Shown piece after piece: positions 21,682 to 46,640 of a stretch of DNA of 64,000 nt. The notes beneath the pieces are model-generated. The model was not told the origin of the DNA, ran no database searches, and was given only the letters and a program-made list of their open reading frames with translations. Numbering within the stretch: position 1 is the first letter of the stretch; the number at the start of each line of letters is the position of its first letter. The translations under genes and the position numbers were made by a program. Source of the DNA: Marsupella aquatica (Eukaryota > Plantae > Marchantiophyta); the NCBI GenBank assembly GCA_973895155.1, contig OZ316897.1, forward strand, positions 13,019,375-13,083,374, in the 5' to 3' direction.

Positions 21682-22973
21682 CCCTGGTTCCTCACTCTTA
21701 CTATATTAAGTGAACCCCCTTGAGAACAGACACCCCTCGTGTACCCCTTCTTAATATTTTTGTTCACAAAAAACAATCCCTTGTTAATGTAAAAACATTA
21801 TTTTTTCCTATAAAAATTTATCCTTTTGTAAATTATAACAGAGTTTTTCAAGGAATTAAGAAAACCCTTGAATTTTTAAAAATTGTAAATATCATACTGA
21901 AACATAAAAGATTCTATTTTGCATAGGGGAATATTATGTTACGCTGATGTTCACGGTATATATTTTATATAGATCATAACAAAATTAGTACTAAAGATTT
22001 ATAGTTCTTCCTAGAGTATATGACTATAACTCAGGCAACTTGTAGACCTCATAGAGATAAACTGAACTAGTACAAATGCATTATTATGCTATGCTATATC
22101 CTTGGAGGAATAATTGCATATATACTACTTATGTAAACTCCAATTGCTAAATTATTCTATCTTGACTAAGAATGGTATGACATCAACCATTAACACCAAA
22201 TGATAAGTAGAGTTTTTGGCAACTTCTTTCATGCAACTTGACACATCAAACCACACATTAATCATACATATTCTAGACACAAAGTACTAATAATACAAAA
22301 AATGACTACTGAAAATTGTGGAGAGTAATACCATCAAATTTCCTTTGGCTGAAATTGTTACTTCGACATGGTGGGTAATTTTCCTGCCATCTTTGCAATC
22401 AAACAACTGTGAGCACCGGGTACCCCCCCCAACCCAATGATCAAGGGAGTACACCACCCCACACACAAACACACCTGGCCTCATACCTGGCCATTTGATT
22501 CAAGGGAATTCAAAAGTAATCTTGTTTGTCTATGTGGGATTGATTCATGGGTCCCCATCAATCCCAGAACCCCAAACGAGTTGGGCCCCAAAATCCTGGC
22601 CCAACATTTACTTAACTCCCAACTTAACACATGCGGGTAAACAAGTCTACCATGCAAACCCATGAAACCAAACTTGCCTTAAGAGGATAAATAATTAAAT
22701 GTCTGATTTACTATATGGACATGTGTGCCAATGAAGTGATGACATGTGTGCCAACCATATAGTGACACGTGTCCTTGGCATTTTAGGTACCCTTGCATAA
22801 GATTAATGTGACATGTATTTGATAAGAGCCTTATTACTAATACTGTGATGAATGTATATACATGGATGTTGCCTACTTTAAAAAATATTATAAAAATTAG
22901 TTTGCATTACATTAAAAATACCCTTGCGTTGTTCGCACGTCCTCCTTGCATTAGTAATGCTGAGGGCCCAGGG
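21682..22973. mobile_element. Non-autonomous TIR DNA transposon (1.29 kb) with an 8-bp TSD, inserted in copia integrase
   Basis: TIRs ccctggttcctcactcttacta and (rc) ccctgggccctcagcattacta. Flanks gtgaattt (21674-21681) and gtgaatat (22974-22981). Removing it restores copia GCSVYIH-IPAPLRSKL. Confidence 0.85.
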
Positions 22974-23956
22974 GTGAATATATACTGAACAGCCAATGAC
23001 TCGAAAGTGACTGACATCAGGTTTGGTGCCATGGAGATCTTGAAAAGGGGTCGTTTTGTAGAGCGATCTAGTGGAACAGCGATTCAAAATGTAAGTAGCC
23101 GTTCGAACCATCTCTTCCCAGAGGGGAGCCAAAAGTTGAGCCCCAAAGCAAAGGCTGCGAGCTGCTTCAATTAAAGTGCAATTTTTGCGCTCAGAGACCG
23201 AGTCAGAGACACCATTCTGGTGTGGTGTGTAGGCAGCCGTGAGTTGTCAAAAAATTCCATTGGTGGAACAGAATTCTTGAAAATCCCGGGAAATGTATTC
23301 CCCACCTCGATCAGTTCGTAGACATCCAACCTTATAGCCATATTGACTAGTGACAGAAGCACAAAAAATCTTGAAAGTAGCAAGCACTTCTGATTTGAAA
23401 CGAAGAAAGAACGTCCACGTATATCGTGTGAAGTCGTCTGTGAAAGTCAGGACATAGCGAGAACCTTGCAAGGAAGGAACACGTGCTGGTCCCCAGACGT
23501 CAGAGTGAACCAGTGCAAAGGGCCTGGTTGTCTGAGTTCGAGAGTGCTTCGGAATTCTTTCACGTGTTTGCTTGGCAACAATGCAAGTGCTGCATATGGT
23601 GCTGACTGGAGAAAGATGAGGTATGCCATTGACTAACTGGCTGGAGCTCATGTGCGATAATTTCTGGAAATGAATATGGCCAAGCTCGGTGGCCAAGCCG
23701 TTTGTGCCAATGTATCGTGTCAGATGAAGAACAAGTGGCAACGTGACATTCATAACCTATAGGGAAGGAGAGATCATGTGGAAGCTTGGGTGGAGGCTTT
23801 CGAACTAGTGTACATAGACGAGTTACAGGATTGTGAGTTCCATGCTGCAAACTTGACGTTTGTCATCTAACACCATACACTGTGAGGAATCAAAGCATAT
23901 AGTGTGTCCTAGATCAGCAAGGTTGCCAACGGAAAGTAGGCTACGTCGGGCACTCG
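22974..23956 (-). pseudogene. Copia GAG-pre-integrase and integrase core (frameshifted)
   Basis: ORFs 23560-23850, 23247-23753 and 22878-23132 carry HHCC and DDE integrase motifs. Confidence 0.92.
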
Positions 23957-28632: not shown

Positions 28633-31600
28633 ATGTCTTCATCCTCTACAACTTCCACCACATCAGATTCCTCTTCCGATGAAGAAAGTCATCCTCCTCC
28701 TCAGCCTGAACCAACCGTACGTCGACCTAGTGGTCCACCACGCCAACTTTGTGGTTGTAAAAAATGTGTGGGGATGGTTGTCCAAAAGTCATATGTATGT
28801 GCGGAGCACATTGCTCGATATGGCCAACATCGAGGTCTTACACCGGGAGCTTCTTCATCCCGTATGGTGAGTTGTAAACTTACTGTGATTTCCATTTTAT
28901 TTTGTAAATCTTGCTAGGTAGCATAAAATAAAATTTGGGAGGTTCATCACACTCACTTGGTTCCATTTCTTCCTATAGGTATCCAGTAGGCCTACACCCA
29001 CTACACCAACACCCTATGTTCCCTCACAAGGAGTTCTAGATGCTATAGGCTCGGCACTTTCACAAGCTTTTCGTTTAGTGGCAGCAGGGCAAGGTAGTGT
29101 TGGGACAATTCAAGGTGACGGTATTGTTACAAGAGGGAAAAAAAGTCAAAAAGACAGCCTAGAGGGGAAGTGGATCATCAGTACACTTGTAGGGTTGATG
29201 GTAGATGGGGCCCTTGTACCTTCACAGGGAAGTGTGTTCCTATCATAAAGGATTGGAATCCGGAATGCCTTGGTTTGCCATGTGATATAACCTATGGTGA
29301 GGAGATAGAAGTTTGGGGAAGACGTTGGGTTGTCAAGAGTTCGACCCTAGGGGAGAGGCATGGGTATGGGATTTTCTCTTGTTAGGACATTATTGTGGAT
29401 GATGTGGGTGGAAAAGGGGCACCTCGGACAGATTATGAGGTCATGCAAGACCAAGAGTCAGCCATGGATGACTTCACAACAGATTGGTTTGGTGTAGACA
29501 TTGGTGGTGAAGGAGGTGTCCCACCCAATAAAGGAGATCCTCCACCAAATGTTGCACATGATCCAAGGCCTCAACGTACACCTGAAGGACAAAAACAATG
29601 GGAAGAAGTTGAGGCACATGCTAGAACACCTATTTATGGGGGTGCTCGTTTGAATAGACTATCTGCCATCTTGGCATTGATGAATCTTCAGGGAAAACAC
29701 AAGGCAAGCAATGCGCTACTATCGACTTTGTTTGCAATTTGCCATGATCTCTTGTTACCCATTGAAAATGTGTTGCCAGGAACTTGGAAGGAGGCAAAGA
29801 GGGTTCTATCATCCATTGGCATGGAATACCATATCATTCATGCTTGTGTGAATGACTGCATTCTCTATCATGAGACCAATGCCGGCGCAATTGAGTGTCC
29901 AATTTGTCAAGAGCCTCGATATGAAACCAACATGTTGACCTCAAAGGTGCCTAGAAAAGCTGTTCATTGGTTTCCTATTATTCCTTGATTGTTGCACATG
30001 TACCGATGTTCTGACTTGGCAGAATTGATGGTATGGCATAAGATACATCGATCAGAGGCCGGTGTCATGCGGTTGCCAGTTGATTCCCCTGCTCACAAGC
30101 ATGTGGAGTCACAATGGCCAGAGTTTGCACGTGACCCTCGTCATGTGAGGTTGGGGTTGGCATCAGATGGGGTGAGCCCACACTCTCTTGGAAGGAAAGG
30201 ACGCCCTACTTCGGTTTGGCCGGTGGTTGTTATGAATTACAACCTTCCCCCATGGTTGTCCATGAAAAAGGGATTCTTATTGCTATCATTGATTATCCCA
30301 GGTCCATCTCAGGTAAAAAATATGGACACCTACTTGGCGCTCTTGGTTGGGGAACTCCATAAATTATGGGGGGGTGTATGGGCATATGATGGTCGGACAA
30401 CTACAGGAGGGTTACCACGTGTCTTCCAATTGAAGGGAATCATTATGTGGACCATGCATAACTATCCAGGTGAGTGGTATGGATTTGTATTTTTTTCATG
30501 TATTGGAGATCAAGTTTGTTTGGAAGGAAGTCCCTCTTTAATTCTAGAATGTACATACATGAACTTTTCAATTCCTTTGACTCTAATTGAGAATGTTATT
30601 TTGTGAGCAGGGTTTGGGTTTGTTTCTGGGTTCCAAACTCAAGGGTACAAGGCATGCTCCACTTGTGGTCCAAGCCTTCACGATATGGCCAAGTACTCAA
30701 AATGGCTGCACAAGATAATCTACCTTGGTCATACCAAGTTTCTTCCACTTGGGCATCACATGAGGTCTGACCCCCTTTTGTTTTCAGACTTTGACATGAT
30801 CAATGGTGATGAGCGTGAGATACCTGACCGCACAACATTTTTGTATTGGAAATCCATAGCTGATAGGGTGGCAGACCCTGAAGATGCCATGGGATTTTAT
30901 GGTAGTGGATTGACAAGGTGGAGTATACTGGCCACGTACTTTGCCCTATTGGCTTGAGTTGAAGATTCATCACTTGTTAGACCCCATGCATATAGAGGGA
31001 AATGTTGGGAAGGCTTTGATCAAGCACTTTTATGGGGAAAAGAACATTAATTTTAGGGAGGCATGCCAGGATCTAGAACGACATCCAGATGTATGGATAA
31101 CAGTTGATGAATCCATAGAAATGGAACATCGTCCTTCAGCTCCATGGGTTTTGAGTGTTGGTGAAAGAAGAGAGTTTCGACAATGCATAGGGCAGATGCG
31201 GTTTCCTACAAGCTATGGTGCCAATCTACGTAAGGCCTTTGGGATGGAGGAAAGTCATAAATGGCCAATGTACCTCAAGACACATGACTATCATCGTTTA
31301 CTACAACATATACTTCATGTGGCAATCATAGGTTTGGGGAGTGAAGAAGTGCAAGACGCCCTTTGGTCACTGGGCACTTTGTTGAGATGGATATGCTCAA
31401 AGGAAATATATGAAGAAGAGATACCACGGATGGAGGTATTGGCAGCAGAGGTGGTATGCAAGTTGGAGAAGGCCCTCCCTCCTTCTTTCTTTGATTGTCA
31501 GGTGCATCTTCTCGTTCATCTTGTGAGGGAGGTTGCCATTGCCGGTCCGGTGCATTGTAGGTGGATGTATTGGCTGGAAAGGTATATGGCCGTGTTAAAG

Positions 31601-31986
31601 GCTTATGTACGGAACCATATACGAGTGGAGGGGAGCATGGCAACTGGATACTTGGCAGCTGAGAGTATGTTTTATTGTAGTAACATCTTAGCTACCATTG
31701 ATCCTAGTTGTCCACGCACTTGGATGGAAGAGAGGGAAGTGGAGGAGGACCGTTTAATAGGTGCAAAAAAAACACGCTTACTAACCGCAGTGGAGTTGAC
31801 ACAGGTTAGTACTTTCATGTTGAGTAACAACAATGTGATGGAAGATTGGAGAGAGTTTTATGAGGATGCAAAGAGGGAGAGTCGTCGCCCAAGGATCTTT
31901 CCAAAGTTCCTTGAGTATATGAAGGAGAAAGTACTTCAGTTGGATGCTATGGTGGCCCAAGGTGAGAATGTATCACATTTTCCAGA
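28633..31986 (+). pseudogene. CACTA TnpD (Tnp2/Transposase_21 plus DUF4218) transposase, disrupted and truncated
   Basis: N-terminal CGCKKC...H. Motifs IHACVNDCILY, RLGLASDG, YNLPPW, LDPMHIEGNV, LKTHDYH and GPVHCRWMY. Introns ~28867-28978 and ~30470-30610. Stops at 29383 and 29986, frameshifts at ~29140 and ~30940, and MHDYP reads MHNYP. Confidence 0.93.
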
Positions 31987-32593
31987 CTCGGGGGTCTCAC
32001 TATATGGAGGACCCCCCCATCACCTGCGACGTTTTCATGCCTAGACCCCCATACTTATTAAGTTGAATTTTTTTTTTCCTCCCTCTTTCTTTCTTCTAAG
32101 AGTCTAAAATCCAAATTGTATTGCCCCTATAATTTGTGAAGTAAAGTGTCACATATCAATATAAAATGCCTAGAAAGAAAAGATAAGTCTATGTCAGTAC
32201 CTTGTGAAGTCGTATGTCAGACATGGCACGCCCTGCAACAGTTCTTGCACCTTTGTCGACCTTAAACTTTGATCATTTCAATGCATCATTTATATTGTGT
32301 ACCTAAAAGGTCATCCCAATATAAACCTTACGTGCATAAGTGGGATGGCCTTTAAGGTCACAACATAAATAATCCATTCCACCCATTGATCACCAATCCC
32401 ATGCTCCATCCATACTCCATTTAAAACTTATGTTGAGAGATGTAACATGTGACGGAGGGGAATTGAACCCCTAATTGAGAAAGGATCTCAAGTTGCCAAT
32501 CCGTCACCCCCTATCCTATCCCACTACACCCACTAATATTAACAAAATAAAACATATATACAGACTCTCAAAAACTAAACAGTAACATGATAT

Positions 32594-35500
32594 TCATACC
32601 ATTGTTTGAAGATACTGATCCAAAGCACGTCTATCTATTGGATCCAACACATAGATACGATCCATAACCCCTTCTTTCATGGTTAAACTAACACTAGCAA
32701 TGACCATTTCAATATCCATCCATTTCAAATCAGTGGTATCATATCTGAATTCACTTTTGCTCTTACCAATAGGACTATACCAATTTAACAACAGTTCACA
32801 AATGTTACCTGATTGCCCTGCAAGTGGAGTTGGCCTATCCATCAAATCAATTGGTGACCAACAATTGCCCCACCTACTGCCATACTTCTGTCTCATTTGG
32901 ACAATCCGACCCAACCAAAAATATTTCTTACCTGCTGAGATTGCCTCCACCACAACCTTATTCTTTCCTCCCTTTCTTTTTCCAGATCTAGTACTTGGAG
33001 CAGGACTATCATCAGACTCAAATGCAATTGCACAATCAGTGCCAACATCAACAAAACATGAGTTAGGATTGACTTCTTGCACTTTTCTCTTGCCAGTACT
33101 ATAGTATAGCACTTGTTTCACCCTTGTCAGCCTATCTTTTGACAAATGCGGATTTCCTACCAACTGGCTTACCAGAGTGGATTTGTAAATCACCTTGCCT
33201 TCATAAGTAACAGTAGGCACTACCTTGGTACGATTCTGTACATTAGTTATAGCATGGACAACTGATCCAAACACATGCCGAACTTCATGACCTAATGTCT
33301 CAAGCTCATCTGAGGGGTCTACATCAAACTGTATATCATCTCTGTGTACATCATCTGAATGCATCTCAGGAACAACAATGGGATCTGGTTCTGTTAACCA
33401 TGCATCTATTCTATTCAGATCATCCTCAGGATCTTCCAATTCATGAAAATCTCCAGTTGGGCGAGGACCTATGTCTGGTGGTTGGTGCTCTACTTGCTCC
33501 TCAGAATCATTGCAAACAATTGCTTCCTTCAGAACCACCTCTAGTGGCCAGGTCTCACTTTCCACAACCCAAGGACATGTCCACCATCTCTTTCTAGCTG
33601 TTGGTAAGGAACTTCGTGGAGACATCTGCAATTGATGCATAAGATCCTTAGCAGCAACAAAACCTTCTTTAAGGGCTGCAACCACTAATTCATTAGTCTC
33701 AATGAGAGAATAGTCAAGTAGATTTGGTGCTTCCTCCCCTTCCCCTATAGGATGAATCTTCCCCCATACATGATCTTGTTTCTTATGTGAACGACCTATC
33801 TTCAAGCCTTCTGGTCCATATTCTAGGGCAGCAAGCCGGTTCAGTCCAACAGCACTATCCAACAGAGAGCCAAAATCATAATTCCGCTCATGGCCACTCA
33901 TGCCTCCTACCTTGCTGAAGAAAATCTCACAACAATCTGAACCTAGCAAGTGGAAGGGAACACCTAGATGTGGGAACTTATCTCGAAAGGCACAAATTAA
34001 CAGCACAATGAAATGACATGACATGTTAACATCATGAAAAGCCTGAATAGACATCATGTCTTTCTCAGTGTGTGCTGCAAAGTTCCCACCCACTGAATGG
34101 TCACCAAACCTCAACCACAATCTCCACAAACGTAGAAAGAATGAAACCTTGGATGCTAACACAATACGGGACCTCAAATCATGAACTGGAGAAAAGAAAA
34201 TATCTAAGTAATCTGCACAAATCTCCAAGTACAACTGAGTTCCTAAACTTCGTTCATGTTGTACATCTCTCCTCTCATACATATCTTTCAGACATTGCTG
34301 CACTCTTCTTGCTGCTATTCGTTGTGGACCTGCCCAATTCTGCCGGTCAGTCCTATTCACATCATCCCAAGCCATGCCATGTTCATGAATTGGATAATGA
34401 TTGTAGACATTAGCTACATAAGATAAAGATGCATGTTGATCTCCTAGCACCAGTAAAGAAGACACTCTGTCTAAGGGGTTTATCATCTTTTTCCCATTAT
34501 GAGGTTGGTCTTGGTCACCAAAGCCATACAAATCTCCATTTGGTAGAATTGAAACAGAGTATGTCCACCCTTCCCACCCAACTCCGTACCTTGGGTATGA
34601 TCCATTCTGCCCTCTGTAATCTTCCAGCATCAGCTTTCGGCGACGTGCATCACCATCACTAGCATGTCCAAGCAAAGGGCCTACCATAGCTCTACAATAT
34701 TCATCCCAAAAAGCCTTTAACTGGACCCAATGCTCTCGTACCCAAGAAGCTGTGAACTTATTACAAGTTGGAAGTGCACACACAGCCAATTTAGGTAAGG
34801 ACTCATGCAGAGGATTCACAATCACAACTCGGGCATACATGCACTTGGGGCATTGTTCAAATGTACTTACAATTTTATCATACCCCTCATCACCTTCACC
34901 AACTAGAATTTCCAAACCATAGGAGCATACATGCTGCTCTGAAGGTCCGCAGAAACCAATGAGAGTATCATACTTTGCCTCCCACCTGAAACACAGACAT
35001 GCAATTTTTCAATATCACAGCAATTCCAGCCAAGTGCTACTTGTAAAGTCATTAAAAAAACAATTGGAAAAATGTCCAGTTCCAATTACCTAGGGCGTTC
35101 TTTGATCCTTGTTTCATCCTCAGCAAAGATAACAGGCACATCCCCCTCAATGCCCAATGAGTGCTTTGCAGCAAACAACACTCTAGCAATCTCCTGAAAG
35201 GTTTCCTTCCGTAACCCGGTTCGAAAAGGTGTGAGTTTTGCTCTATCACGTTTTAGGGTCACAAGGCTAGGGGCTGTCAAGTTTTGTGCAAAACAATGAG
35301 CAACTTGACGGCCCCCAAATTGGAACATAGCCTGAGCAATAGCTCGAGTCCTATTACTGTAACGATTACCTTTTGGCTTCCTGCCTAAATTGCGAGCTAC
35401 ATCCTTCAAGAAATCCCACAAACCCTCCTTACCACCAAATGCACCATTCCTGTGTCCATTCAAAATACTCCTAAGAAACAATCTCAAATCCTTCCTGTTT

Positions 35501-37170
35501 GCTGCAACTCCTAACAACTCCTCTAGTTTTCGTTTCCTGGTGCTCAAGGCACATACTTTCTGAGCCTGCAAAGCTAACAACCAACGCTCTTTTCGTCGCA
35601 CAGAGTTCAGGTTGTGCACTTGATCTCTTAACTCTGTGTTGGTCAAATAATCCAAACGTATACCACCAGCAGTGGTTCGGCTCCCTCTGTGGACTACTGC
35701 TTCCGCTTCCCTGTGCACCCGTCCACGAAAATCATCTTCTAGTGTTATAGAATCACATTCACTACAAGTTAGATTTTCAAATCCTCCTCCATTCTGTGAT
35801 AACCTCAAGCAATCCTTGTGTCTAAAACAGCTTGCTATACTCACAACACTCTCTCTACTTGGATGGAAAACATCCAAGCAACAACTTGGCTCACAATGCC
35901 ATGTAATTCCCCCAGACTGATCATCTAAAATGCCAGAAATATCATAAGATATACCCTTCCATAACAGTCGAGGCACACCTCTCTCTACCCATAATCCCCA
36001 GCAAAGCAAACTCAGACCAAGATCAACAGATTCACACACACCTGAACCTGAACCTGAACTGCTGCCTGTCCGGGACCCATCATCTTTAAAGAACTTCAAA
36101 ATCCCGCTCTGACCAGGATGTAGGTCCCTAGAATCAGTCCTCTTTGGCCTGCCCCTCTTCCCAGACCTCAAGGCAAGCATTTTTGTGTCATGCCTAGTCT
36201 CCAATGCATCCAAGTGATCTCGACTCACTAAGTGTGTCCTCAAATTGGGCTCCAAGGTAAGCTTCTTGGGGCACAAGTCAGTGTGAAGCATTCCACAGAC
36301 AGTACAGCGAACCTTAAACAGGAAAGACCTGTTTACATACTCAGGAGTACTGGGATCAGGAACAATAGAGAATAGTTTGCCATCATCCCCAAGCTCAGCA
36401 TTCAATCGCTGAACTATCTCAACACCTACTTTGATGGCGTCTGCATGATCATATTCTGGCTTCTCAGAGATGTCTGCTACCTGAACCAAAGTAGAAGGAA
36501 TGCCCCTTCTCCGACAATAGTTATCCTTGTGCTTATTGAAGACCAAGTGTTTGGTCTTAAAATTACTAAAGCAATTGGAGATGGATTTAGGGTTCTGAGA
36601 GTTGTCTGCATTGCCATAAGTTTCCCTACATTCAAGACACTCCAGATGCCCTCGAACATCTGTCCCCTCATCCCAGGTACGAATTCTCCAATTGTGATCA
36701 CCATAACCCTTCTTATGTACCCATTTCTCTAACCTCATCCACTCATCTTTCCATAGCTTTGATGGGACATCTCCCATCAATTGTGACTCAAAAGAAGCCC
36801 TTACAGGGGAGGGTGCTAGTGCTGTTGGCCTCAGTTGTGGTGTCTCAGTATTTGGACCCAATGATGCAGGAGTGCAAGGATGACAGGGTACTGGTGGGAT
36901 CCTCCCACCATCTCCAAGTTCTTGTTGTACAACAATAACTCTTCCATCCAGCTCAGACAGATCAATTAATTTCTCATGTACAAGTTTCACTCGACCAGGA
37001 AGTCTCTCATCCCAAAAATCGAAGTCAAAGTCTAGAGTAGAGGCAATACGAGCCCTAAAATCATGTAGGGTGTGTCCTTCTTTGAATGACAAAACACAGA
37101 TTGGTAAATCAGCCTTGTCATCCCCAACTTTGCGTATTAATTTAACAGAGTTGGGTTTAGGGGCTGCCAT
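32594..37170 (-). CDS. Intact two-exon ~1490-aa DDE transposase (P-element-like) with N-terminal C2H2 fingers
   Basis: Exons 37170-35090 and 34985-32594. The 104-bp GT-AG intron (35089-34986) joins in frame as AEDETRIKERPR/WEAKYDTLIGFCG. Downstream motifs GHASDGD, DQPHNGKKM (DxxH), DRQN and GSDCCEIFFS. Fingers CLEC..H..H and CTVC..H..H. Confidence 0.8.
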
Positions 37171-37669
37171 TGCAATACAAATCTAGAACATGCATAGCAC
37201 CATTGCTTTTGGAGTCGATAACAGAAAGACCTGCACAAATACATTTGAAATACACACAAGGGAAACACATTAGGATCTTCAAGAGATGCAATGACAACAT
37301 ACACATTCTCATGTCAGTAATGTACATAATGTCAGCATACATTTAACAATAGAAGTGCTAATAGGCCAAAACACTTTATAATGCAATCCATCATACATGC
37401 AAATGTATTCAGTGAAAATCATGATATACCGTTAAAGTTGGATAAAATATCTTTAGAAAAAATATCCTTTTTGCCTGGTTTTCTAACAATTCCCGAGGTT
37501 TAGTGCTTTTGCTCATCAAAATGCAGCACTATTAGTGACCGTAATTATGACAAAATGTCAACACTAATAAAATTGGGTACTACCACCCATGATGCAGCTT
37601 AAGTATATGCCTTGCTCATACCCCACTAAGACGTTGAAACCTAAGTAATAGGTTTGTTCATTATTCAGA

Positions 37670-38329
37670 TCACTGGAGCCATGAAATGTGGTCCCTGATT
37701 GGAGTCTTCAGGTGTGGATCAATAGGATGACGGGGGCAATAAAACATCTGTCGCTGTTGTCCATGTGCTTCATGTTCCCAGATGTCCCTATCATGAGCAA
37801 ACCCTTTGCTTTTGATCATCTGGAGACAATCTGTAAGCCACGCATTTGGACATCGTAAACATTGTACCATGTTCTTGACCATCTGACCCTCAAGACTCTG
37901 ATAACATGTCACACATGTATGCAGTGGGCAGGACTTTGCAGCAGCTACCAAACACCCAAAGCAATAAAATCGTACACAAAAATGATCAGAGCATTTTCGC
38001 ACAATTGTAGGTGACGGTCCCACAGTGCGGCACCCATAACACATGGCCTGGTCCTGGTTACAATTTGGGCAAAACCATGGCTTCCCTCCATGATGGAGGG
38101 GAAGGACTACACAGGGGCAAGAGTCATTAGGGGCTTCATCTCCAACCACATAATGAAATTGCCTGTGACATGGCCCATCACAAATTACCAACTTCCCACC
38201 ATGCTCACAAATTGCACAAACATGAGGGCTGGTTTGTAGAATCTCTTGCTCAGAGAACAAGGGAATACACAATACCTCTTCTAAAGAGGACTGTGTTGCT
38301 TTCTTTATGTTTGAAGTCCTTGTCGGCAT
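37670..38329 (-). CDS. EDM2-like composite PHD-finger protein (~219 aa), transposon cargo
   Basis: CAICEHGGKLVICDGPCHRQFH...WFCPNC...CYGC...CVRFYC...CPLHTC..C...QCLRCPNAW..CL...FYCPRHPIDPHLKTPIRDHI matches the EDM2/NSD-type PHD cluster. ATG at 38329 follows a ttcag acceptor. Confidence 0.8.
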   Translation of the reverse strand: MPTRTSNIKKATQSSLEEVLCIPLFSEQEILQTSPHVCAICEHGGKLVICDGPCHRQFHYVVGDEAPNDSCPCVVLPLHHGGKPWFCPNCNQDQAMCYGCRTVGPSPTIVRKCSDHFCVRFYCFGCLVAAAKSCPLHTCVTCYQSLEGQMVKNMVQCLRCPNAWLTDCLQMIKSKGFAHDRDIWEHEAHGQQRQMFYCPRHPIDPHLKTPIRDHISWLQ

Positions 38330-38671
38330 GGTTACAACTGAAATCATCACAAAGCACATCACATATGAGAGGGACATGTATGATACTGGGCAATCCATAG
38401 AACTTGGAGAAATCCACATTTGAAGTAGTTACAAACCTGCTCCAATGATCTGCAAACCTCCCTCCCAGATGAAGTCAACTACACAGTGCAGCCTGGACAC
38501 CCACCAACCAAGACATACATAAATACAATGCCAGCTTGCGAAACTTTGCCACATAATGGGAATGAAAATTATTCTCATATATCATGGATGGTACAATTGC
38601 AGCCTTGCAAACAAAGGCCTAGTCATCCCGGACCTCAAGTCATGAACAACGCATCCATGTACTATCAGGGA

Positions 38672-39070
38672 CTACAATGTCAAGCATCCATGGGCTGTAA
38701 CCTTAGCTTGACCTGGAATACTATCTGGGGCTACAATATCAAGCTCAGTTATATGTGGAATACTATCTAGGACTACAATGTCAAGCGTGTCCGGGATGAC
38801 AATCTTGCGTAAAAGACACTCATTTTGAGGCCAAATGGTTGGCCTTATACAAGAGCACCTCCAGTGACTTGTGACAACTTTGCCATGCTTTCCCATGTAT
38901 GTCCTAGTAACAAGTCTTCCACGCATTTTCAAGCAGAAGCAATGGAACCATTCAAAATTGCCATCACCAACCCTGCACTTCACACAAGATTCGCACCAGC
39001 AGCATTCATCTGGATGCTGCAAAAGGAGCTTCTCATAATTCGCTTCTAATGTAATGCCCAATTTAGCCAT
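38672..39070 (-). CDS. Second, divergent PHD-like (ING-type) ORF or pseudo-exon
   Basis: CCWCESC..C.....EWFHCFC...HWRCSC. Confidence 0.45.
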   Translation of the reverse strand: MAKLGITLEANYEKLLLQHPDECCWCESCVKCRVGDGNFEWFHCFCLKMRGRLVTRTYMGKHGKVVTSHWRCSCIRPTIWPQNECLLRKIVIPDTLDIVVLDSIPHITELDIVAPDSIPGQAKVTAHGCLTL

Positions 39071-41599
39071 GGCACTATTTCTTTTACTCGGTGAATGGCC
39101 AGGCGATCAGACGTGCAATGACAGGCAACTTACAATTCACTAGGTACAGTATGTGCTCTAGCAAAATGCTTCACCGCAAGTGCTGGTGCTCACAGTTGCA
39201 AGCACTGATTGCTTTTGCAACCTGTGAACAAAATTAAAACCACCAGTTCAATAAGTTTCAAATGCTGCAAGCGCTGAAGACAACCAATTGGCCATGATGC
39301 ATGTTACGACAGCAATAAACAAATAATTGGGCTCAACAGACCTGAATAGCTAACCTGAATAGCTAACCTGAATAGGATCATGGACCTCTCATAGCTATGG
39401 TGTCCTTCCTACATTACACATTGGTCTAATTTATGCAGTGTTTCACTATGATTGTGTTCCATAGAAGAGCATCCAATCTGGCTGACCATTGGAGGAAGCT
39501 TGGGCTGGGTCATAGCTACAGCAATTACTCCTCTGCAAATGCTATTTGTTGGTAACACATGTTTACTCATCAGTAGACGAATGAAGCATCTGAGGTTTTT
39601 GAAACTTGTGCTCTGATGAGGGAGTGAGTGACGTGGGAGCCATGATAATCATAGATTCAGTGCAAAAGCAAAATCCATGCTCAAAGGCAAACGTGGCAAA
39701 ATTGGGTATATGTTCTTCACTGCCAAAGCTTCTGTTTGCGCAGCAAAATCCACGAAAGGAATGAAGGAACAAGGGGGAACTCCAGACTCAAGAGCCTCAA
39801 TTGCTGCATTGTGGAAACGTGTTGCGTGGGAGAAGTCGTTGGCTTGTAGAAGAAGTAAAAGTGTGCTGGTGAAGGATTTTGTGGTCGGGGTGCATCATAA
39901 GGTTGACACAGAGAAGAGAGAGGTGTGGAGAGGCGAGGAGAGGAGCAGAAAAGTAGGAAAGGCCGTGTAAGGCAGTCGATAAAAAGCGAGTTAGGTTTGG
40001 AGTGTCCTCTCGACAGCAAAGGATTTCGTGTGTGCTGAATTTGTTGCTGGTCCAAATTCCAGGAGCCAGTCAGTAACGGAATAGTGGAATTTTGGGAATA
40101 GCAGATGCTCATCAGTCGCAGCATCTGCGTATGTTTTGTCATCTGGGGAGAATTCAATGAGGTTTGTGGTTTTGGGGAAGGCTGCTGTGAAGAGTTTGTG
40201 TTCGTGTGGAGGGATTGGTGGCAAATTTTGATTGGTGCAGGGCAGAAGTAGCAAGAGATGGGAGAGTGACAGGATGTGGAGATCGGTTGGCCGTAACCAA
40301 GGCAGCGCCAATGACGACGAGGAGCGTGAAGAGGCAAAGGCGGAGGAAGATGAGGAGGTAGAAGAACCAGACCACCAAATAGAGAATTTACTACATCAAA
40401 GACACTACAGAGATGAGCGCATCAATGGGCTACAACATATTCAAGTGCGGATCCCTTTTTTGCAATCAACTCACGGAAATAGAGGATTTACACTTACTTT
40501 CCCCACCACAAATCATTCTTGGAAGTGTCTTCCTTGACAACACGTTTGTCCTTCGGAGATCGGCCAGTTTTCGCCCCGGAAAGCGTGGCAAGAGCCCCTG
40601 TCCAGGTGATGTACAAACTCTTCTCGTGCTTCAGAGCCTGTTCGTAAAGCGCTGCAAAGAGAAACGGCAAAAACTTTAGTCATTATAATTGAATCAGAAC
40701 ATGGGAATAGACAGAGACAGCTTCCAAACGCTCAACTAAATCTTGAAGCAACAACCATGACGATCGCGACCCGTATGCGGCGAATGGACACAACTATGCT
40801 AGGACAGGACACAACGAGAGGGCACCGATCACCGTATCTAGAGAGCTGATTTATTCGTCTCCTACAAATCATAAGTCGCACAGTAGAGTTTCTACGCATC
40901 TTAACGTAGGAACGAAGGTAAAAGGTAGTTTTTTTACCAGGCATCCTTGGAAATGAAAGCAACTTTTGAACTATCGACATGATGTGACAGAGTACAAGAA
41001 AGGCCTTCAGTGCATGTGAAACAGAAATGCTAGAACTACTCATGAGTTCACATGAAACACAATTCCCCGGTCTAACTACTTTCAAATCTCGATGGGCAAA
41101 TCTAATGCATATGACTTGCGCAAGCAATGTCTATGGAACACATCGGCTACGACCGCTACCAGATAAGGTGTGCCATGCGTGGTACATATGGGCTTCAAAC
41201 AGTAGCAAGCAAGCATGATTGAGCGTCAAACAATAGCAAGCAAGCAAGCACGATCGTCAAAGCAGGAAGCGCCCACCTCCTGGTTGAGCAACACAGCAAT
41301 GCTGGCAGCAGCCCTGGCAATCATGTTTGAGCAAGCAACAATGCAACACTCTCGCTCCCGTTTCAGCAAGCTAGTAGCTCCCGTTTCAGCAAGGTAGCAG
41401 CTTCCGTTTCAACAAGCAGCAACGCCACACTCCCGGCACCCACCTCTTGTTTGAGCAGCTGCAACGCAGCACTTGCAACAGCCACACTCCCGCCCGCACT
41501 CCCTGTTTGAGCAACAACACAGCAGTCACATAAACTTTCCTATCATTTCAGCAACAGGAACGTAGCACACTCCCTCAACCAAGACAATAGCGCACCTAT

Positions 41600-42175
41600 A
41601 CACTCCAACCTTGCAGCGCAACACTCTCGCCTAATCCTTCACTCCCGGGTTCACTCCAAGCAGCAGTGCAACCGAGAAGTCTCGCTCTCCCCTTTACTCT
41701 AAGCAGCAGTGCAGCTGAGAAGTCTCGCTCTCCCCTTCACTCTAAGCAGCAGTGCAGCTGAGAAGTCTCGCTCTCCCCTTCACTCTAAGCAGCAGCGCAG
41801 CCAAGAACGACCTTGATCCTTCACTCCCAAGTAGCAGCGCGCAGTCGAGAACTCTGGGTTGATCCTTCACTTCAAGCAGCAACAGCAGCAATGCAGCCGA
41901 GAGCGCAACACTCTCGCTCTCCTCTTCACTCCAAGGCGCAGCCAACAACTCTCGCTCGATCCTTCGCTCTAAGCAGCAGTGCAGCCAATAAATGTTGCTT
42001 GATCCTTCACTCCAAGCAGCCGTAGCAGCAGCGCAGGCGAGACCACAACACTCTCGCTCGATCCTTCTTCACTCATAGCCGAGAGCACAACACTCTCGCT
42101 TGATCCTTCTTCACTCGCATCCGAGGTCACAACACTCTCTCTCGATCCTTCTTTGCTCCAAGCAGCAGCACACTC
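41600..42175. repeat. 43-bp tandem array and degenerate derivatives near the right end of the TIR element
   Basis: aagcagcagtgcagctgagaagtctcgctctccccttcactct three times (41658-41786), then diverged copies. Confidence 0.85.
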
Positions 42176-42721
42176 GTTTAGACCCCCGTTTACACCATTT
42201 GCTGCAAGGTACAAACAAAAGAGTCTCTCATCCCAAACAGCGGGTGGGGCCAAAGGGATATTGGAGGGAAATGACACGGGAGGAGACTAACAAGGGCGGC
42301 CAATTGAGGGAAACTAGACATGTTAAATGGAACAATTTCAAACTTAATCCCACTCAAACCCTAAACGTGAGTCCCCAAAAAACCAGACCCACTTAAATCA
42401 TTCTCAAATTAGAATCCATGTTAAAATAAACATGACTTAGGAAAATATATTGAGAATGTTATGTGTGCCATGTGTACCAATGATATAGTGACACGTGTAA
42501 TTTACATAGTCCGACACAAAGACCCCCTAACTTCCTTGTATGCCTTCCATCTACATAGTCAAAAATATTAATATCCCTATTATTCTTACAAGTTGTCCAA
42601 CATATAAAATTGACCCTATTGTTCTTACACAAATCTTCTTAAGTCTTCCGAGAAACCCAATTAACGGACCCTATACTTAGTCGCACGTGATATGAGATTT
42701 TCGCGAAGTGAGACCCCCGAG

Positions 42722-43050
42722 CATTGAGGAAAGACACCTTCTTTGTCTTCTTTGCCTGTTTTTTGTGACCAGGCACCTTTTTCCTGCTAATGTGCTGTTG
42801 CTTTTCCCTTCCCTGCAAGAACATCAGGCATGACAATGAATTAGGGAATATAACAACAGCAAATGGCATAGAACAGGAAAGAACACAGACTTGAGCCTCA
42901 CCTTAATTTCCGAGAAGCGTTTCTCATATGCCTTCAGACGAGTTTCATGTGTAGGTTCTCCTCCTTCTCCTTCCTGTTCCTCTGCAAATGTACTCTCTTC
43001 TGTACGCCGCCTTCGTACATTTGCAGAGGCGTACTCTCTTCTGTTGCCAG
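42722..43050 (-). pseudogene. Two-exon gene fragment, possibly the distal part of the 51.3-53.6 kb gene
   Basis: EEQEGEGGEPTHETRLKAYEKRFSEIK, then a GT-AG intron at 42901-42813, then GREKQQHISRKKVPGHKKQAKK, cut by the TIR. Confidence 0.4.
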
Positions 43051-46000
43051 AGGTGGATGTATTACGTTTGGAATGGGAGGATAAGGGACCACCAGAGCTG
43101 GACGTACAAATTCAAGGATGTGTTGTGAGGAGAGTACCAGTGGATGGTGGTTCCAGCGTCAACCTCATGACTCAGCAAACTGCATTTAATCTTGGATTTA
43201 CTAAGTTTGAACCAACACCCAAGATCCTGCGCATGGCGGACCAATCTCGAGTTGTTCCCGCGGGAAAATTAAGTAAGGTAGATACTCTGATTGCTGGTGT
43301 TCCATTTACTTTGGAATATGTGATAATAAGTCCAGAGGTACCTTCCAGCTTTCCAGTCTTGTTAGGCCGCCCCTGGTTGTATAAAGCCCAAGTGCAGGTA
43401 AATTGGAAAGCTCAAGAGATGTCTTTTGGTAAACCCAAGGTGGTGGTGAGTTGGGCTACTGAGGATCATAAGGGCGAGACGCAAACTGACGACGGGTATA
43501 CGTCAGACTTTTCGGATTCCAACCTGATTCTGGAGCCATTGGAGTTTGAGTTGGAGGAGGTACACTATTTGGAGGTTTACCTATCTGATCCAGTTGTGGA
43601 GACTGGATTAGCTTCTGAGGACCCTTTTTGACAATTTCCACCGGAAGGGGAGAAAGCAAACTTACAAGGAGTCGGCCATGATACAGGGAAACAATTCTCA
43701 GATCAGCAAATGCATGGCGTATCCTCCGGTAATGGAAAACACCCTCCCTCTCCGGAAATCAGTGAGTCTGATGTTGGTAATTTGGAGCTTAGGCCAGCAG
43801 GCCTAACGGATGGTATAGTGGACCCTAAGGCTTGTCAAAAAGTTGAGATTGAACCTGGCAAGTTCCTTAATATAGGAAAGCATATCCAGGGTGAGTTGCG
43901 GGACTTGTACATTAAGTTGTTGACCCAGTACAAGGATGTTTTTGCATGGAGTCATTCAGATTTGAAGGGCATCCACCCTCATCTGGGAGAGCATCGGATA
44001 GACTTGATGGAAGGGGCAGTGCCAGTCCGTCAAAGGCAGTACCGTTTGAACCCCAAGTACTCTGTCCTTGTGAAGGAGGAGCTGGATAAGTTGACTGCTG
44101 CTGGTTTCATCTACCCCGTCTTGAGTAGTGAATGGGTATCCCCCATTGTCATTGTACCCAAGAAGGCGGGACCTGATGGAAAGACAAAAATCCGCGTGTG
44201 TCAGGACTATCGGAAATTGAATGCAGCCACCAGGAAGGACCATTATCCCTTACCCTTCATAGATCTAGTGCTTGATCAGGTCGCATTGCATGAGTTGTAT
44301 ACTTTTCTGGACGGATACTCTGGGTACAACCAGGTTTCCATTCGAAAGGAGGATCGGGACAAGACCACGTTCACAACAGATTGGGGTACATATGCGTATG
44401 CAATGATGCCATTTGGGTTGTGTAATGCCCCAGGCACTTTTCAGCATATCATGATGATTATTTTTCAGGAGTACCTTCGGCACTTCATGGAGATCTTCAT
44501 CGATGATTTCTGTGTGTATGGATCGGCGGCTGACCATTTAATGCACCTCGATAAGACTTTCCAGAAGTGTCGGGAAGCTCAATTGTGCTTACACCCCGAG
44601 AAGTGCTTCATCGGAATGCAGGAAGGTATCTTGCTCGGCCATGTCATTTCTCAGCGTGGCATAGAGGTGGACAAAGAAAAGGTCCGGGTGATCGTGGAAC
44701 TTCAACCTCCGACGGATTTGAAGCAACTCCGTGCCTTCTTAGGGCATGTCGGGTATTATCGCAGATTCATTCATAAACATGCTGATATTGCTATGCCTCT
44801 GACCAAATTGCTCAAACAAAATGAACCTTATGTTTGGAATGAAGAAAGACAGCAAGCTTTTCAAACACTAAAGGACCGCCTTGTGACTGCGCCCATTCTC
44901 TCCCCACCAGATTGGAGTAGGAAGTTTCATGTTTTCATTGACTCATCTGCCTTCTGCATCGGAGCTAACTTGAGTCAAAAGGATGACGACAATAGGGATC
45001 ATCCCATTTATTATGCCAGTAGGCAGATGAGTGTTGCTGAGAAAAACTATACAGTTACCGAAAGAGAAGCCTTAGCCATTGTTTTTGCCTGCAAAAAGTT
45101 TCGTCATTATCTTCTTGGATATCAGATCATCTTTCACACGGACCATCATTCTTTGAAATACCTGGTTAATCAAGTTGACCTGTCGGGGAGGGTGGCTAGA
45201 TGGGTCCTCCTGCTTCAGGAATTTGATTACGAGGTGCAAGTCCGTCCAGGGAAACACCATGAGAATGCCGACTTCTTGTCTAGACTTCCAGGTACAGAGA
45301 ATGACCACAACCTGTCTGACGACTTTCCGGATGAGCACCTTTGGCACATTGAAGGCGAGTCCTCAAAATATTTTGATATTGTGAAGATGTTGCTGTATGG
45401 GGTCTTTCCAGAAGGACTTAATGCATAGGAGAGGGCTGTTTTTGCACATAAGGTAGGACCTTATACAATTATCAAAGGCACCTTATTTAAGCAAGGCCCT
45501 GATCAAAGGTTACGGCGTTGCCTTGAGATGAGAGAAATTCCACAGGTAATTGCAGCCTTACATTCTGGTGAGACAGGCGGACACTATGCAGTTACCACCA
45601 CTATTAAGAAAATTCAAGATGCCGGATATTGGTGGCCCACAATGCACAAGGACACCTACAATTTTATTAAAACCTGTGATCCATGCCAACGAGTAGGCAA
45701 ACCCACTGCATCTTCTAAATGGCCACTCACTCCCATCCTTCCTTTGGCCCCCTTTGAGAAATGGGGTATTGATTTTGTAGGCCCAATTTCACCAGCCGCT
45801 AGGAAAAGTCGTAGCAAATACATTATTCTGGCCACTGATTATGCCACCAAATGGGTGGAGGCTAAAGCCACTCGCAAGAATGATGCTACAACAGCGGCTG
45901 CTTTTCTCTTTGAGCATATTATTACTCGGTTCGGGTGTCCTTTGGAGTTGGTCAGCGATAGGGGTCTACATTTTCTTAACTCAACTATTGAGTTAATTAC

Positions 46001-46640
46001 TGACATATATCTTATCAAGCATCGCAAAACTACTCCTTACAACCCCCGAGCTAATGGCTTAACGGAGAGAGCTAATGGCATTATGGGCAAGATTCTGAAT
46101 AAGATGGTGGAATCTCACAAGACTGACTGGGATGTAAAATTGCACTCTGCGCTTTGGGCTTACCGTACTGCTGAAAAGATTACCACCCTTAGAACCCCAT
46201 TTTATTTAACTTATGGGGTTGATAGTATTATCCCTATTGAGTTTTCCATTCCTACTGAGCGCTTACTTATTCCTGAGAGATTCACCCCTGAAGCAAGTAT
46301 CGAGAGTCGGTTTGTTGATATTATGAAATTAGAAGAAAATAGACTTTTAGCCTTAGAACATACTGCTGTAGTCCAAGCAAACCGGAAACACTCTTATGAT
46401 AAAAAGCTTAAACAGGTTAAGCTAGCTAATAATGATTTAGTGTTAGTTTTTGATTCCCGCTACATGCTTTTTCTGGGTAAATTACATACCCATTGGATCG
46501 GCCCTTATCGAATTGAGAACATATGGCCTAATGGTTTTGTATCCTTAACCACTTTAGATGGATCCCCCTTAGACACTAGAATTAATGGCTTTAGATTAAA
46601 GCCCTATCACTTCTATTCCGCGCATGAGGACATGTCGTAG
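43050..46640 (+). pseudogene. Gypsy pol in one frame with two nonsense codons
   Basis: PR VDGGSSVNL; RT LDGYSGYNQ, MPFGLCNAP, FIDDF; RH EREALA, TDHHSL, ADFLSR; INT H..GGH..C..C, WGIDFVGP, SDRG, NGLTER, GPY. Stops at 43629 and 45426. No chromodomain. Confidence 0.95.

Follow-up and report, generated by a model that had tools for sequence, protein, structure and literature searches.

Results

Organisation of the locus

A 10.7-kb transposon lies at positions 31987-42721 of a 64,000-nucleotide stretch of Marsupella aquatica contig OZ316897.1; that whole stretch is called the window here, and all coordinates refer to it unless another sequence is named. The element is bounded by 15-bp terminal inverted repeats (TIRs), at 31987-32001 and 42707-42721, that are complementary at 15/15 positions. 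The 15-mer had 2 matches in the 64-kb window with up to 2 mismatches allowed, where 0.07 were expected by chance. The initial annotation of perfect 15-bp TIRs starting CTCGG around two open reading frames (ORFs) was thus upheld, the two arms being a unique pair in the window. The ORFs are the exons of a transposase gene, and a small PHD gene lies upstream in the same orientation. The features of the element are listed below.

31987..32001, plus strand: 3'-end TIR (CTCGGGGGTCTCACT), downstream of the transposase stop, beginning like the TIRs of the relative L001
32019..32030, plus strand: subterminal inverted motif ATCACCTGCGAC, candidate transposase-binding site, 11/12 inverted match to 42680-42691
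32594..34985, minus strand: transposase exon 2, 796 aa plus stop (frame 34984-32597, stop 32594; the ORF at 32594-34915 extends in frame to 34984)
32615..33064, minus strand: predicted BAH-like beta-barrel, exon-2 residues 641-790, predicted local distance difference test score (pLDDT) about 90
33926..33928, minus strand: catalytic Glu codon (exon-2 E353, in GSDCCEIFFS), invariant in 42- and 58-sequence alignments
34655..34657, minus strand: second catalytic Asp codon (exon-2 D110, in SDGD), at an invariant or nearly invariant column
34986..35089, minus strand: GT..AG intron of 104 bp with GTAATT donor and pyrimidine-rich TTTCAG acceptor
35090..37170, minus strand: transposase exon 1, 694 aa, an ATG ORF (frame 37170-35089; ORF 35086-37170)
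35116..35118, minus strand: first catalytic Asp codon (D685, in AEDET), at an invariant column directly before the intron
37670..38329, minus strand: stand-alone PHD-cassette gene of EDM2/NSD type, 219 aa, starting at Met31 of its ORF, co-oriented with the transposase gene and 500 bases upstream of its ATG
41650..42153, no strand assigned: 5' subterminal tandem arrays with a repeat unit of 42-43 bp (Tandem Repeats Finder; direct-repeat family D4)
42680..42691, minus strand: subterminal inverted motif ATCACGTGCGAC (minus strand), partner of 32019-32030 at a near-equal distance from its end
42707..42721, minus strand: 5'-end TIR, 15/15 with the other arm

The transposase gene

Joining the two ORFs through the 104-bp canonical intron gives a predicted transposase of 694 + 796 = 1490 aa with no stop or frameshift, close to the product of about 1490 aa proposed initially. 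Exons 1 and 2 were searched as separate sequences. Exon 1 residues 18-692 aligned to residues 19-713, and exon 2 residues 1-792 to residues 716-1494, of the intron-free 1498-aa ORF of L001, and the splice model is supported because the exons are colinear with that ORF and no residues are lost or gained at the joint. Several database homologues are likewise uninterrupted across AEDETRIKPRVRW, where the window gene has its intron. The GTAA of the splice donor (35086-35089) places an in-frame TAA immediately past codon 694, so that only the DNA-binding half (694 aa) would be made from an mRNA that kept the intron.

A word search returned 65 homologues, with members named from two liverworts (Riccia sorocarpa and R. 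fluitans), an Adiantum fern, a sea spider and a jellyfish-type gene set. Of the 5,283 representative proteins that the profile search gave at E ≤ 1e-3, 868 also passed E ≤ 1e-30. Many family members were fragmentary. Members of the family, numbering thousands, come from liverworts, ferns and cnidarians and from moss and peat samples. Exon 1 was 34% identical to residues 13-595 of the homologue P0015 and covers the helix-turn-helix (HTH) region of the homologues.

An N-terminal domain of ~85 aa opens exon 1 and is followed by two Cx2C...Hx5H fingers, an AT-hook, a Cys cluster, a coiled coil, the P-type HTH and D685. In exon 2, D110 and E353 flank a helical insertion domain, after which come a disordered linker and a C-terminal beta-barrel. 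The DNA-binding features of exon 1 were placed as follows.

Residues 178-214 and 289-319: Cx2C...Hx5H fingers
Residues 337-344: AT-hook
C454, C469 and C472: Cys cluster, family-invariant
About residues 579-641: P-type HTH

Neither transposase exon had a Pfam match at E ≤ 1, whether to THAP or to the TNP-like P models, which agrees with the earlier description of a protein with two C2H2 fingers and a Cys cluster and no THAP domain. The motif series DE / SDG / DxxH-xxK / xDxxExxFS, also described initially, was found as AEDET, SDGD, DQDxxHxxKK and GSDCCExFFS (GSDCCEIFFS in the window), all at family-invariant columns; in the 42- and 58-sequence alignments the D of EDET, SDGD, DQDxxHxxKK and the E of GSDCCExxFS were invariant. 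Exon 2 keeps 52/53 family-conserved columns, and the family-invariant residues of exon 1 (C454, C469, C472, D685, E686 and T687) are all present. One substitution, Gln85His, falls at a 91%-conserved column.

In P0062 (Nymphon striatum), a decayed family member, residues 1061-1179 are annotated in one protein with a YqaJ/viral alkaline exonuclease domain. This union may reflect either fusion of gene models or another cargo.

Predicted fold and superfamily placement

The AlphaFold (AF2) model of window exon 2 had a pLDDT of 83.4. Searched with Foldseek, it matched the Drosophila P-element transposase strand-transfer complex 6P5A with an E-value of 2.8e-4, and all other matches were above 0.1. 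Alignment of the model to 6p5a with VIA-align gave Z 22.1 and a root-mean-square deviation (rmsd) of 3.6 Å over 307 residues, model residues 1-391 being paired with chain residues 240-569. Only 6p5a reached Z ≥ 8 among 48,161 PDB representatives, every other chain scoring 6.9 or less. The assignment to the P-element/THAP9 type, initially made from the motifs, was therefore supported at the level of predicted structure.

A full-length model of the homologue P0006 (pLDDT 78) includes the upstream HTH and the first catalytic strand. Its match to 6p5a was stronger in Foldseek (E 3.9e-11, TM 0.72), and Z was 22.5 over 411/442 residues (model 176-681 versus chain 131-569), with the alignment spanning the HTH, RNase H and insertion domains. 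Other transposases scored far lower against P0006, with Z of 9.9 for Transib, 8.9 for ISCth4, 8.6 for RAG1 and 8.4 for Hermes.

Four weaker, independent links to P transposases were obtained from sequence. The 42-sequence full-length profile had as its top PDB match residues 62-247 of 6p5a, the HTH region (E 0.0017); PF12017 was matched by 2/42 family members; the decayed member P0062 passed PF21787 with 33 bits (cut-off 24.6); and the nearest ESM-Atlas clusters carried the TNP-like RNaseH_N, GBD and RNaseH_C families (score 0.95), which is a lead only. Because the fold, the target-site duplications (TSDs) of 8 bp in the relatives described below and these links agree, we place the transposase in the P superfamily, a model-based reading that is well supported; hAT and Kolobok assignments are not supported. 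THAP serves DNA binding and is not what defines the superfamily catalytically. The structural alignment of exon 2 over chain residues 240-569 takes in the GBD, the GTP-binding helical insertion of P transposase between beta5 and alpha4, a region where no sequence-level alignment was obtained. GTP-contact residues of the P element include K385, D444 and D528 (PMC7776569).

Ends and relatives of the element

Relatives share C(T/C)C-GGGG-TCACT ends, and the ends of the window element recur around L001, with similar ones in two further elements. L001, on a peatland metagenome contig (192-6287), is a 6,096-bp, apparently intact element with 26-bp perfect TIRs starting CTCGGGGG / CTCGGGGGGGTCACT, a perfect 8/8 duplication (GTTTTCAT), the single 1498-aa intron-free ORF and no PHD gene. 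L026 (966-8468), a 7.5-kb element of a coral-associated metagenome, has G-run TIRs, ends CCCCGGGGGG...TACTCC, a TSD matching at 7/8 positions and a transposase frame split among several ORFs. The third is a non-coding 1.3-kb relative in the window itself (21682-22973), with ends CCCTGG..CCTCACT, a GTGCGA subterminal motif and a 7/8 duplication, GTGAATTT/GTGAATAT. Its TIR is only 10/15 identical to that of the 31987-42721 element, and so another subfamily may mobilise it.

When eight ends were aligned, a subterminal motif GTG(C/A)GA(A/C)C followed by AGGGT was seen 30-50 bp inside. Both L001 and the 1.3-kb relative keep GTG(C/A)GA(A/C)C at their ends, and the ends of L026 align at the same place with more divergent sequence. 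GACCCCC motifs are concentrated near both ends of the window element, which hold 6/10 of those in the window. By analogy with the internal transposase-binding sites of the P element (PMC7776569), the subterminal motifs are plausible sites of transposase binding. The first base of the element is C, and the transferred strand therefore ends in G; in the P-element complex the terminal G of the transferred strand contacts GTP (PMC7776569).

The C-terminal barrel

The C-terminal barrel had no Pfam match (exon 2, E ≤ 1). Its best structural matches were the H4K20me3-bound BAH1 domain of DNMT1 (Z 6.9 and rmsd 2.6 over 81 aa) and the BAH domain of EBS (Z 6.8), and about a dozen BAH domains matched at Z 5-6.9 over 75-103 residues. 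Further BAH neighbours were those of MTA1, DIM2, ORC1, ZMET2, AIPP3, TNRC18, ASI1 and Sir3. Chromo-barrel, Tudor and PWWP domains, together with lower BAH matches, scored Z 4.5-6.5, so that the structural neighbours were almost all histone readers. Each Z is middling, although the neighbours are consistent, and for that reason the modelled fold suggests a BAH-like reader as a fold-level lead only.

The PHD gene and upstream region

The protein of the PHD gene, a predicted triple PHD cassette, aligned to residues 650-793 of NSD2, the PHD1-PHD2-variant PHD block (E 3.5e-5). A Pfam scan of the four upstream ORFs gave weak NSD-PHD matches only; for the cargo protein PF23004 scored 25.8 bits and PF23011 24.8 bits, both just below the cut-off of 27. 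Its nearest Atlas clusters were streptophyte NSD-like PHD proteins. Six stand-alone PHD homologues of 213-304 aa were found, 43-82% identical to it, with a common basic N-terminus, all Cys/His residues in common and a C-terminal DHISWL. These common termini argue for a start at Met31 and for a conserved stand-alone gene, not a fragment.

Co-oriented PHD ORFs upstream of the transposase had been reported in the plural. One of these stood, at 38329-37670, with a His-to-Leu change; the 132-aa ORF further upstream (38672-39070) was rejected as a PHD sequence at an hhalign probability of 0.1%. The cargo region as a whole (37171-42706) had no relatives in 75 related loci by tblastx and tblastn, and no second copy in the window by blastn and tblastn. 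Upstream of the PHD gene this leaves 4.3 kb with no relatives in the 75 loci or the window, besides the 42-43-bp tandem arrays.

Flanking sequences

Two other transposable elements adjoin the transposon.

29395-31986, plus strand: CACTA transposase fragment (Transposase_21 at 29989-30603, DUF4218 within 30941-32041), stopping abruptly at the 3' TIR
42891-46637, plus strand: gypsy pol, whose first ORF weakly matches protease, with reverse transcriptase, RNase H and integrase following, and with no gag or 5' long terminal repeat (LTR)

The gypsy pol begins 170 bp from the 5' TIR of the element. No LTR pair spanning the 31987-42721 element was found in the LTR pair search, and the gypsy element is therefore simply truncated at its 5' side. 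A copia-type integrase fragment (gag_pre-integrs + rve) was also seen elsewhere in the window, at 23247-23753 on the minus strand.

Discussion

Weighing the P-superfamily reading

We read 31987-42721 as a full-length copy of a THAP-less lineage of cut-and-paste transposons of the P superfamily, and give this reading, with the mechanism and chromatin-reader interpretation set out below, a probability of roughly 85%. Several results weigh against it. At the sequence level the catalytic core shows no detectable similarity to P transposase: phmmer and profile searches against PDB sequences, run with each exon, with A1 and with the core-only alignment A7, found no P-transposase match, and 6p5a was reached by the full-length profile alone, through its HTH region. 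The Z values of the BAH-like barrel, at 5 to 7, are middling. This copy has no TSD, as its outer 8 bp (TTTCCAGA vs CATTGAGG) match at 3/8 positions, and its flanks are unlike, with CACTA transposase sequence beside the 3' TIR and gypsy pol beyond the 5' TIR. In the cargo PHD protein His195 is replaced by Leu (CTT), where 6/6 homologues have His; all invariant Cys are kept, and from the alignment the change is probably the loss of a zinc ligand. No PHD sequence was found in the 75 related metagenome loci by tblastx or tblastn.

The duplications of 7-8 bp expected from the initial annotation were borne out in the relatives (8/8 in L001, 7/8 in L026 and in the 1.3-kb element) and not in this copy. 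Since its flanks are unrelated and carry no duplication, they were never one target site and were rearranged after insertion. Most simply, either two copies recombined or a deletion began precisely at the 5' end. Inter-copy recombination and end-adjacent deletion are known consequences of transposon activity.

Proposed mechanism

For the P-superfamily element as we read it, the N-terminal zinc fingers and the HTH would bind the subterminal motifs, and a transposase multimer would pair both element ends. The DDE site would then excise the element and join its 3'-terminal G ends, staggered by 8 bp, to target DNA, while the PHD protein and the BAH-like barrel might read histone marks and so steer insertion or counter silencing. 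The fullest version of this proposal is a still-autonomous land-plant P transposon whose own chromatin readers, the PHD protein and the BAH-like tail, set its landing site or shield it from silencing, and in which intron retention would yield a 694-aa, DNA-binding-only product that is a possible repressor. We regard this version as quite doubtful.

Alternative explanations

A real possibility, at somewhat below even odds, is that the copy is structurally complete yet immobile, a recently inactivated or silenced relic in which the altered flanks and the damaged PHD gene are the first decay. The missing TSD with unrelated flanks, His195Leu in the PHD gene and Gln85His in the transposase would all fit such a relic. 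The transposase itself argues otherwise, as its 1490 codons are open and its conserved exon-2 columns, Cys cluster and D685-E686-T687 are intact to the extent given above, and so do the identical TIRs and the retained subterminal motifs. Excision is possible with no TSD, and the missing duplication by itself does not render the copy immobile.

Also possible, though unlikely, is that the PHD gene and the 4.3 kb upstream are passive cargo, either part of a host gene that was captured or filler. PHD sequence was found in 0/75 related loci from other organisms, PHD domains sought in the long homologues were not found, L001 manages at 6.1 kb with the transposase alone, and the window PHD gene carries the His-to-Leu change. 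Against this stands the stand-alone family, whose members have a conserved start, a conserved stop (after DHISWL) and conserved Cys/His residues at the lengths and identities reported above. A conserved, complete family of this kind indicates selection on a whole small gene, not on a fragment.

That the element is a hAT or Kolobok element, linked to the one by an 8-bp TSD or to the other through THAP, and that its resemblance to P reflects only a common plan of RNase H plus insertion domain, is very improbable. In favour of this view, no Pfam P model matches the window protein, the N-terminal fingers are BED-like, as in hAT, and no Kolobok structure exists for comparison. The Hermes scores, however, were Z 6.8-8.4 versus 22 for P transposase, and PF05699, the hAT C-terminal dimerisation domain, had no match in the transposase exons. 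Kolobok elements make TTAA target-site duplications, whereas those of the relatives are 8 bp and non-TTAA. The HTH region, moreover, matches P transposase by profile as well as PF12017. Scarcely credible is a domesticated, transposase-derived host gene in place of a mobile element, for although the long open frame is well conserved, the TIRs and subterminal motifs are kept, other transposable elements surround the gene, and its family is thousands strong, with many fragmentary members and with relatives that have TSDs.

Comparison with known systems

The P-superfamily reading can be set against several described systems. To our knowledge P elements, a textbook system, are treated as essentially absent from land plants. 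P-type miniature inverted-repeat transposable elements (MITEs) were found only in Chlamydomonas among 21 green-lineage species examined (PMC9641971). The P-type MITEs and elements of Chlamydomonas, the only ones that searchable papers name from the green lineage, bear the same superfamily label within Viridiplantae, but they are algal. A 2025 survey of 1007 plant genomes by Pfam screen reported no active P clusters and seven other superfamilies only (PMC12973397); a blank for P is expected there because Pfam models miss the window lineage. No published description of the lineage was found in searchable papers, and this, with the lack of THAP and of Pfam detection, fits the initial proposal of a distinct, possibly undescribed P-related lineage. 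What is new is the occurrence in a land plant of a P-superfamily lineage that is THAP-less, zinc-finger-bearing, BAH-like at its C-terminus and PHD-carrying, a conclusion that is supported; the superfamily itself is known. With its ends defined and its frame open, this copy is a specific candidate from which a new transposon tool for plants could be made. It also makes it possible to ask if the unusual mechanism of P, with its GTP cofactor and long staggered cuts, is ancestral. The PHD gene and the BAH-like tail suggest that a DNA transposase may be linked to the reading of histone marks, which can be tested.

The closest likeness is to the Drosophila P element and vertebrate THAP9 (PF12017, PF21787-9), with the same order of coiled coil, HTH, split RNase H D-D-E and large helical insertion, and with Z of 22. 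As in the P element, TSDs are 8 bp (in the relatives of the window element), the transferred strand ends in G and the transposase gene has an intron. In the fly the 66-kDa intron-retention product is a repressor, to which the predicted 694-aa intron-retained product is likened. Unlike P and THAP9, the window transposase has no THAP and carries instead the two Cx2C...Hx5H fingers, the AT-hook and the Cys cluster; at 1490 aa it is twice as long, with about 46 extra residues between the first two catalytic Asp. A predicted BAH-like barrel forms its C-terminus, in contrast to the C-terminal domain described as acidic for P, the two being set apart by description. The TIRs of the window family are 15-26 bp and start CTCGG, whereas those of P are 31 bp and start CATG. 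Core sequence similarity to P is undetectable, and the host is a land plant.

The window element resembles hAT elements such as Hermes and Ac in the 8-bp TSD of its relatives, in N-terminal fingers of BED-like type and in having an insertion domain within its RNase H fold. It differs in its low structural score with Hermes, the lack of the hAT dimerisation domain and the P-type HTH. Relative to EDM2 of plants and NSD of animals, the cargo protein is the PHD cassette alone, with no catalytic or other domains; it is transposon-encoded and has the His-to-Leu change. A further analogy, from general knowledge, is with chromoviral integrases that carry C-terminal chromodomains, in which a recombinase likewise ends in a beta-barrel of the histone-reader type, except that the window enzyme is a DNA transposase and its barrel is BAH-like, not a chromodomain.

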